A stretch of 63,530 bases of DNA, filler included, from Reticulomyxa filosa (taxonomy: Eukaryota; Protista; Foraminifera): the NCBI GenBank assembly GCA_000512085.1. It is 20 parts of 20 records of this genome, joined end to end, with 100 filler letters (N's around TTAATTAATTAA, not from the genome) between each part and the next. Parts side by side here need not be neighbours in the genome. Positions count along the whole stretch, not along the records: positions 23,938 to 27,989 come from ASPP01023958.1; 19 more parts are not named here. One strand, 5' to 3'. The number at the start of each line of letters is the position of its first letter. The stretch's first letter is position 1. The notes under the pieces are model-generated. The model worked only from the letters and a program-made list of their open reading frames with translations. It ran no database searches and was not told the origin of the DNA. Made by a program: the position numbers and the translations under genes. Below, piece after piece: positions 23,938 through 25,731 of this stretch.

Positions 23938-24177
23938 GTGGGGTACTGGGAGTGGTGCATGCCGTAAACATGCAGATTGGGTTGTGTTGAGGGGCTGCGA
24001 CCAGGGTGTTGTAGTTTCCACGCACGGTTACAATATACCCTGCCCTCAATGTGGCCACACGCCTCTTGGTGCATGGTTTGCTCTAATAGAGACGTTAGCT
24101 GGGGCCATGCATTGGGAGACGTGCAACAATCCACGTGATTCACCGCGGTGAAGAAGGTTCGACTCCTTCCGTCATCA
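23938..24177 (+). ncRNA. Candidate structured ncRNA with tRNA-like 3' module, 5'-truncated by gap; family unidentified
   Basis: GC-rich island with long G-U-containing helices (23980-23993/24043-24056; 24058-24079/24102-24123), T-arm GAAGG-TTCGACT-CCTTC (24153-24169) and T5 at 24204-24208. Confidence 0.6.
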
Positions 24178-25731
24178 TATAAATATATTTACATACGTAT
24201 ATATTTTTATGTTTATATTTATACGTATATTCATAAAATACTTATAAATTTTTTATTGTTTGATATATATGACACATGTGCAAGCATACTTGTAAGAAAA
24301 AAGTGTGTTGTGAATATGCTTCTCGAACAGATAGTATGCAACAATGGTCATTTTCCATTGGCTACATAGCAGTGACCCCCCCCCCACCCCTCATCCCAGC
24401 ATGACTCCATTTCACAACTCGTACAGTCCCCCAAAGTCTCTGGAAAAAAAAATCGCCACAAGTAAAAGATTTGATTGGTTGTGTGTATGTATTGCGCACG
24501 CGTCCGAGAATTGGACAATTTGCTTGTTGATATATTGTGTCACCACTAAAGAATTTGTTTTGTCAAAAGAAATCAAAATAGCAACATTAATTGCAAAAGA
24601 TGAAACAATTTTGTCACCCATGTTGGAAGGAATTGCTTGAACGATATAGTGACAAGTGAGAAGAAAGTAAGATCAATGTCGTCGACATGTAGCCACACCA
24701 ACATCTGACAAGTGTGAGACGCGTAGCTTGAGGTGATTGACACTTTTTACTTGGTATTGTTAAAGTAATCACCAAACAGTACTAAACCTGTCCGGTGGGG
24801 TGATTATTATAACTTTCGTCCCAATGCCCTCCATTGTTCTACTGCTCCTTCTCCTTTCACTGGTGGAAAGGATTCAAAACCACCCACCCCCCTCTAATCA
24901 CCAAAAACATATTACTTGGGGCCGCTTCATTAATACCAAACGGAAGTGACATTTTTTTACACATTGCCAAATACAGTCTTTTATTATGTTGCAATAAGTG
25001 TGCGTGTATTTGTTCATTTTTTTTTTTAAAATCTGTTCTCTATCGGTTCTTGGTCCTTTTAAACCAACATAGAAACACGTCCTTAAACTACGACATATGC
25101 ACACAGACGCCTCTTACTTCACGTGAAATCTTTCCAATACAAACTCTAAATCTTGATAAATTGAGTATATACCTGCACTTAAAATTACCAGCGTTTTTCG
25201 TTTTTTTTTGTTGGAAGGAGAAAACCACGTTTGGTGAACATATAACACTTTGTATCGTCAAAGTTTACTTTCAATATTTTAATCAAAAATTACATAAATT
25301 AATAATTGTATCTAAGAAAAAATAATGGATCGAACTGGTGTCCAATTTTTTTGTCTCCTATTTACTCTTTCTTCCTCACTCTCACCTCATAAACCACAGT
25401 GACTGCTTTGTTATGCTATTGGTTTCACTTTTTTCTTTTGGTATTTTCGGTAAAATGTACATTGGCACTCTCTTATTTGCTATTCTTGTCTTTTGATTTT
25501 CATGGAGTACTCAAAATCAACATTTCCACAATAACAACTCCCAGAGTAATACAATATTACCAAAGTGAAGAAAAATAAGATTAATTTTGGTTTCAGATGT
25601 GGAATATATAATCAATCAATCTTAAAGACATAGTAAATGCTACTAAAAATGAAACCGTTAGTGGGTCATGTAGACGGTTAGTTCTAAATCATTTTCTGGC
25701 TTTCCAACAGTTAGTTGTATTGTCCCTTTCA

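Follow-up and report, generated by a model that had tools for sequence, protein, structure and literature searches.

A probable tRNA-Leu-derived, non-decoding module beside G·U-rich hairpins at a contig edge of the foraminifer Reticulomyxa filosa

Background

In the tRNA-microRNA (miRNA) transcripts of gammaherpesvirus 68 and in the mascRNA of MALAT1, a non-decoding module resembling a transfer RNA (tRNA), of the RNA polymerase III type or recognised by tRNA enzymes, is linked to hairpins of the size of miRNA precursors. In both systems the module is a complete cloverleaf with a paired acceptor stem, and in gammaherpesvirus 68 it lies 5' of the hairpins. Here we describe a GC-rich island of Reticulomyxa filosa, a naked freshwater foraminifer (Rhizaria), in which a non-decoding tRNA-like module is likewise linked to hairpins of this size, but lacks the 5' strand of the acceptor stem and lies 3' of the hairpins. 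The window, that is, the whole stretch of DNA analysed, comprises 63,530 nucleotides (nt) of assembly GCA_000512085.1, and all positions are counted along it. Positions 23938-27989 are the entire 4,052-nt contig ASPP01023958.1, and the island is the first 240 nt of this contig, whose edge cuts the island on its 5' side.

Other systems also resemble this locus in some respects and differ from it in others. Short interspersed elements (SINEs) derived from tRNAs carry tRNA-derived sequence with a B box, as does the island, which may also be repeated, given the contig break; however, these SINEs begin with a 5' tRNA head containing A and B boxes, followed by a body and a tail, whereas the island has only the 3' two-thirds of a tRNA, placed at its 3' end. 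In viral 3' tRNA-like structures with an upstream pseudoknot domain (RF01083), a structured domain is followed by a tRNA-like end in the same order as here, but the island has neither CCA nor a pseudoknotted acceptor arm, and its match to RF01083 is at chance level. Structured intervening RNA between tRNA exons, missed by gene finders, has been reported in the disrupted tRNA genes of C. merolae (PMC3728597) and in the tricRNAs of Drosophila (PMC4536317). In contrast to these, the island has no 5' exon on the contig and does not allow a bulge-helix-bulge to be drawn, and its intervening sequence would measure at least 180 nt, compared with 113 nt in tric31905 (PMC4536317).

Results

The last 59 nt of the island, positions 24119-24177 on the plus strand, have the layout of positions 27 to 73 of a class II tRNA. 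From 5' to 3', the parts are an anticodon-arm-like hairpin ACGTG/CAACAATC/CACGT (24119-23/24132-36, five Watson-Crick pairs), 2 nt, a palindromic variable-arm hairpin TTCAC/CGCG/GTGAA (24139-24152, probability 0.58), directly thereafter a T arm GAAGG/TTCGACT/CCTTC (24153-24169), and finally an acceptor 3' strand CGTCATC with discriminator A (24170-24177), which is the exact end of the GC-rich island. All 15 stem pairs are Watson-Crick. The T arm has a 5-bp stem with G53-C61 and a loop conforming to TTCRANY, contains the B-box consensus GGTTCGANTCC, and found its best phage match in the T arm of an annotated tRNA-Arg. The variable arm is a 5-bp hairpin with 2 nt before it and none after it, and the acceptor strand and A73 are of leucine type. 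The long variable arm and the acceptor end of leucine type are independent of each other and point the same way; descent of the module from a tRNA-Leu is very probable. The anticodon loop departs from this pattern, since CAACAATC has 8 nt instead of the expected 7, no U at its second position (U33) and no purine at position 37. As found on the contig, 24119-24177 is therefore not a working tRNA: it lacks the 5' third and its anticodon loop is unusable, so it cannot decode.

A preliminary description of this DNA had recognised a tRNA-related 3' module; what is new here is its leucine-type class II layout, which reaches back to the anticodon-arm-like hairpin. The perfect ACGTG/CACGT hairpin, which competes with other helices of the island, had been missed. 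This 5' arm of the module was spotted through a class II cloverleaf of 92 nt (24087-24178) that ARAGORN drew at a threshold of 80%. The 5' half of that cloverleaf, with two acceptor mismatches and a D stem of one Watson-Crick and two G·U pairs, was discarded, because at this threshold ARAGORN also reports a spurious tRNA-Ala in the flank. In 400,000 simulations at the base composition of the island, a pair of perfect 5-bp hairpins spaced as in a tRNA and placed before a fixed T stem came up 26 times (6.5e-5), a figure that serves only as a guide because the criteria were chosen post hoc.

The isotype was examined by searching for the T loop together with the CGTCATC acceptor strand while the T stem was left free. 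The pattern GGTTCGANTCCNNNCGTCATCA occurred at 76 metagenome loci, 43 loci of a genome collection and 2 viral loci, and 129 stretches were cut, 44 of which yielded a tRNA call. Among 49 ARAGORN calls in these stretches, 31 were tRNA-Leu; some of the 49 are neighbouring genes or repeats of one gene, and not all end at the match. The tRNA-Leu genes that do end at the match are of eukaryote type, with anticodons AAG, CAG and UAG, discriminator A, a 5' strand GATGACG or GATGGCG, and trailers that start with TAT and continue into a T run. GATGACG, which had been predicted as the missing partner of the acceptor strand, is thus used by real tRNA-Leu genes with a CGTCATC 3' strand, and it is the natural partner here. 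The module resembles eukaryotic class II tRNA-Leu genes, such as those at the metagenome loci L005, L007, L023, L056 and L078, in its CGTCATC strand, discriminator A and canonical T arm, in a variable hairpin placed directly before the T stem, in a preceding 5-bp stem separated from the variable arm by two bases, and in an AT-rich trailer starting with TAT. It differs from them in having no acceptor 5' strand and no D arm on the contig, in its 8-nt loop lacking U33 and purine 37, and in being called by neither ARAGORN nor Rfam. Its variable region is also longer (16 nt, compared with 11-12 nt), and its T run lies 26 nt past the end, compared with approximately 3 nt in those genes.

A group of tRNA-Leu genes with interrupted D loops was observed among the metagenome loci (L036, L039, L049, L043, L050, L030 and L068). 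In these genes, which have the 5' strand GGTGACG and the 3' strand CGTCATC-A, an insert of about 45-65 nt splits the D loop after GCCGAG. Several of the inserts begin with GTAAGT, GCATGT or GTCCGT and have CTAAC or TACTAAC 10-20 nt before a YAG end, signals that look spliceosome-like. The CAG genes of this group additionally have an ordinary intron of 16-20 nt after position 37. ARAGORN misses such genes or miscalls them as Arg or Thr, and a literature search found no published report of them.

The missing 5' third of the tRNA was sought on the contig. The contig carries neither an acceptor 5' strand nor a D arm with G18 G19; both could lie past its edge. In particular, the 181 nt upstream of the module (23938-24118) contain neither, the first 26 nt of six tRNA-Leu genes aligned locally to this segment at or below the shuffle mean, and a multiple alignment with tRNA-Leu genes revealed no 5' similarity. 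The sole stretch resembling a class II D loop or an A box is GAGTGGT (23950-56), a 7-mer that came out when six tRNA-Leu 5' thirds were aligned locally, with a score not above that of shuffles. AGTGGTG (23951-57), the only candidate partner of the acceptor strand within the contig (6 pairs, 3 of them G·U), has a pair probability of 0 and costs 8-11 kcal/mol; a match of this quality is expected by chance about 0.75 times per 190 positions by our estimate. Pairing of GTGGG at the contig start with TCCAC (24130-34) as an anticodon stem would give G32, the anticodon ACU and G37, and was rejected. A permuted gene with its 5' half downstream was also rejected, since no GATGACG plus D-arm pattern occurs on the contig. 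ARAGORN called no tRNA at default settings, nor when introns of up to 3000 nt were allowed.

Upstream of the module, the island consists of a 5' flank cut by the contig edge (23938-23955), in which GAGTGGT begins, and a series of plus-strand helices, all of which were found where the preliminary description had placed them. A small hairpin TGCATG/CCGTAAA/CATGCA (23956-61/23969-74) has 6 Watson-Crick pairs with pair probabilities of 0.76-0.96, and a possible closing helix GATTG/CAATC (23975-79/24127-31) has 5 Watson-Crick pairs and an ensemble probability of about 0.52. Hairpin A (23980-24056) has a 14-bp helix (23980-93/24043-56) that contains 5 G·U pairs; an 8-nt bulge on one side separates it from an 8-bp extension (24002-09/24035-42), and the tip is irregular. 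Hairpin B (24058-24123) has 4, 17 and 5 bp, amounting to 18 Watson-Crick and 8 G·U pairs, with one C·A and three other mismatches. G·U pairs are absent from the small hairpin, the closing helix and the three tRNA-like stems, whereas hairpins A and B together have 14-15. This difference between tRNA-like stems free of G·U pairs and hairpins rich in them suggests that the island consists of two parts differing in origin or constraint.

The G+C content of the island is 54%, compared with 32% in the next 240 nt and 36% in the remaining contig, and the drop falls exactly after the discriminator A24177. There is no run of four or more T within 23938-24177. A 9-mer, TGGTGCATG, occurs in the island in direct orientation at 23953-61 and 24067-75 and inverted, with two C-to-T changes, at 24106-14, and the 3' arm CATGCA of the small hairpin is a further partial inverted copy. 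This recurrence may mean that the hairpins arose from a repeated unit.

When the helices were aligned as inverted repeats, the transition mismatches comprised 15 G·U against 2 A·C (binomial p 0.001), and each of them is a C-to-T difference on the plus strand. The earlier argument that the G·U-rich stems indicate strand-specific structure at the RNA level is borne out by this count. The excess could reflect selection on plus-strand RNA or strand-biased mutation; either way, it points to the plus strand.

The minimum free energy (MFE) of the 243 nt was -90.3 kcal/mol on the plus strand, compared with -83.4 ± 5 for shuffles (z -1.39), and -73.1 on the minus strand (z -0.89). The statement that this DNA folds almost completely is thus not upheld beyond chance by energy; the G+U-rich composition of the island folds well in any order. 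The description of the island as highly structured is only partly upheld: the z of the whole sequence is not significant, and hairpin B alone stands out (z -4.6 on the plus strand and -4.9 on the minus strand), none of 500 shuffles being equal to it in stability. For hairpin A, z was between -1.1 and -1.7 on the plus strand and about 0 on the minus strand (-1.7 and -0.1 for 23980-24056), and for both hairpins closed by GATTG/CAATC it was -3.5 and -2.0, respectively. An uninterrupted helix of at least 17 bp appeared in 1 of 300 shuffles and one of at least 14 bp in 12 of 300.

Several of the helices exclude each other. The anticodon-arm-like hairpin is incompatible with the GATTG/CAATC closing helix, because CAATC sits in its loop, and also with the 4-bp base of hairpin B, with which it shares CGTG. 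The 3' strand of the variable hairpin has TCATC (24172-76) as an alternative partner, a pairing that would give an acceptor/T-arm minihelix, and GGGAGU (23948-53) can pair with ACUCCU (24162-67) of the T-loop region. The MFE fold uses a pairing of the latter kind, and for this reason the T arm reaches only about 0.39 in the ensemble; the fold with the T arm enforced lies within 0.5 kcal/mol of the MFE. Therefore, with competing folds nearly equal in energy, thermodynamics alone cannot choose among them.

No known RNA family accounts for the island, as had been suspected. Rfam, searched with the whole piece and two short stretches, gave no match below E 0.2, with the tRNA model silent and only chance-level matches to a pestivirus 3' untranslated region, mir-74, queA, UPD-PK2 and SpF41. 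The bacterial queA RNA motif matched 23956-24058 on the plus strand with 19 bits (E 0.2; gathering score 52.6), sharing CAUGCCGUAA..CAUG and AAUGUGGC in the same order, probably by chance, and UPD-PK2 matched 23951-74 with 16 bits (E 1.9; gathering score 32). A transfer-messenger RNA (tmRNA) was rejected, since position 70 is A24174 and no G3·U70 pair can form; ARAGORN reported a tmRNA only at a threshold of 70% and with nonsense tags, and the best tmRNA score in Rfam was 8 bits. The models of signal recognition particle (SRP) RNA and RNase P RNA had no match at E <=10. On reading, motifs of H/ACA or C/D small nucleolar RNAs, of the SRP S domain, of a telomerase template and of a group I intron were absent, and Rfam was silent on them. 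A long terminal repeat primer-binding site on the minus strand was also rejected, as TGG/CCA is absent and the RNA-level structure is on the plus strand. A coding exon was rejected as well; three frames are open, and the only Pfam match was a zinc ribbon at E 0.006, below its cut-off. Origin from a phage or a plasmid was likewise dismissed, because phages match the T arm only and plasmids gave no match.

Beyond the island, the first run of four or more T past the module is TTTTT at 24204-24208 on the plus strand, 26 nt beyond the discriminator, which is a possible stop for RNA polymerase III (Pol III). In the AT-rich trailer at 24186-24237, TAT(A)TTTA(C)ATACGTATAT occurs twice as an imperfect direct repeat, and a palindrome surrounds ATACGTAT. 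Two protein-coding genes follow on the plus strand. The first is a group XII secretory phospholipase A2 gene (PLA2G12) with exons at 25732-25975 and 26046-26431, equal to the annotated R. filosa protein RFI_27710 (206 amino acids); its 70-nt intron (25976-26045) was placed by means of the reading frame and the family motif CCxxHDxCY...CG. The second, at 27493-27978, is the N-terminal part of a DnaJ-domain protein (first exon or exons, with the J domain from about residue 126), truncated by the contig end.

Discussion

Our tentative reading, held with somewhat less than even confidence, is that the island contains a non-decoding module derived from a tRNA-Leu and kept for its structure on an RNA or a repeat of the Pol III type. 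With the same reserve, the island can be regarded as a chimera, in which the last 59 nt come from a class II tRNA of leucine type and are joined to at least about 180 nt of long, G·U-rich hairpins. We favour this reading because the G+C island spans both the hairpins and the module and stops at the discriminator, and because the mismatches are strand-specific. Furthermore, the defects of the module are confined to the anticodon loop, and its three stems and T loop have none, which argues for a structural module under selection and not for a decaying pseudogene. The long G·U-rich hairpins would make sense only as plus-strand RNA. In such an RNA, Pol III would be recruited by the B box in the T arm, with transcription starting upstream of the contig edge and ending at the T run at 24204-08. 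The tRNA-like end might serve as a handle for enzymes that act on tRNA 3' ends or confer stability, and the two hairpins of 26-27 bp might be the cargo, either as a platform for proteins or as a precursor of small RNAs. The island may be one copy of a repeated family, as is suggested by the contig break at its 5' side.

Several points weigh against a structural role of this kind. The argument from intact stems and a spoiled loop assumes that 24119-36 descends from a real anticodon arm. The fold of the whole 243 nt is no better than that of shuffles, and the T arm is formed in only about 39% of the predicted ensemble. The excess of G·U pairs could be produced by strand-biased C-to-T mutation instead of selection. 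A distance of about 215 nt between the B box and any start is unusual for Pol III, and the only string resembling an A box, GAGTGGT, is not significant. In addition, no second copy or homologue was found: exact 25-31-mers were absent from the metagenome, genome and viral contig collections, and neither four patterns in the viral contigs nor a 25-mer in the metagenome and genome contigs gave a match. These collections hold no R. filosa assembly (the contig's own 25-mer gave 0 matches).

The main dull alternative, which we consider rather unlikely, is a dead relic, in which an insertion or rearrangement broke a tRNA-Leu gene near position 26/27 and left its 3' fragment beside an unrelated inverted repeat, for example the end of a mobile element, with neither transcription nor selection. 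The abrupt end of the tRNA similarity at G26/27 fits this explanation, and so does the different style of the hairpins, whose 14-15 G·U pairs, compared with none in the tRNA arms, look like the mark of a separate origin. The recurrence of TGGTGCATG at 23953-61, at 24067-75 and inverted at 24106-14 would also fit, as would the non-significant z of the whole fold and the contig break, the contig stopping here because the element is repeated. However, a neutral fragment that has had time to lose U33 and to acquire an additional loop base should have broken stem pairs, whereas all 15 are intact and the T loop is canonical. An inverted repeat decaying symmetrically as DNA is not expected to leave 15 G·U against 2 A·C, and the G+C island has been maintained against a background of 32-36%.

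The main functional rival of a non-decoding structural module is a real tRNA-Leu gene that is interrupted, with its 5' exon (GATGACG, D arm, anticodon stem and anticodon) past the contig edge; this we judge unlikely. The sequence from 23938 to about 24118-24131 would then be a single intervening sequence of 180-190 nt or more that is cut by the tRNA splicing endonuclease, and the excised structured sequence might persist as a circle. The flawless state of the part resembling a 3' exon would be accounted for, and tRNA-Leu genes with the same 3' strand do have introns, which are long or double at L039, L043, L036, L049 and L061. Ordinary tRNA introns pair with the anticodon region near the 3' junction, but in the last 19 nt of the supposed intron no stretch is complementary to a leucine anticodon together with position 37. 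Moreover, ACGTG (24119-23) would have to be intron sequence that mimics the 5' strand of the anticodon stem perfectly and competes with the real one. Gene finders overlook such genes. The contig yielded no 5' exon, whether in normal or in permuted order. Persistent circular introns with structure are known, such as the 113-nt tric31905 (PMC4536317), and so are ectopic introns in nuclear tRNA genes of C. merolae (PMC3728597), but the supposed intron is far above the 113-nt example in length and far above its own flanks in G+C content.

It is very improbable that the island is the integrated 3' end of an RNA replicon with a structured domain before a tRNA-like end, of tobamovirus type, or a very divergent tmRNA, SRP RNA or RNase P RNA. 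The exact termination of the island at a tRNA-like 3' end hints at such an origin, as do the weak matches to the tobamovirus upstream-pseudoknot model UPD-PK2 (16 bits, E 1.9) and to queA (19 bits, E 0.2), but both matches are at chance level and far under their gathering scores. Moreover, CCA and a 3' pseudoknot strand are lacking (only 8 nt follow the T arm, ...CATCA and then TAT), no G3·U70 pair can form, a tmRNA is called only at a noise-level ARAGORN threshold, SRP and RNase P models gave no match at E <=10, and phages match the T arm only and plasmids not at all.

Conclusion

A relic would be ordinary. Two outcomes of greater reach are, taken jointly, improbable. One is that the island represents a class of foraminiferal Pol III RNAs with a 3' handle that resembles a leucine tRNA without its 5' third and with two 26-27-bp hairpins as processed cargo; the other is a nuclear tRNA-Leu gene whose intervening sequence of at least 180 nt would be the largest of its kind and would give a stable, possibly circular RNA. 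If the island is transcribed, a tRNA-derived module would have been reused as a structural handle in the little-studied Rhizaria; alternatively, it would be an interrupted nuclear tRNA gene of an extreme kind, missed by standard finders. Either outcome would bear on how new RNAs arise from tRNA genes and on how complete tRNA annotation is in fragmented assemblies of protists.

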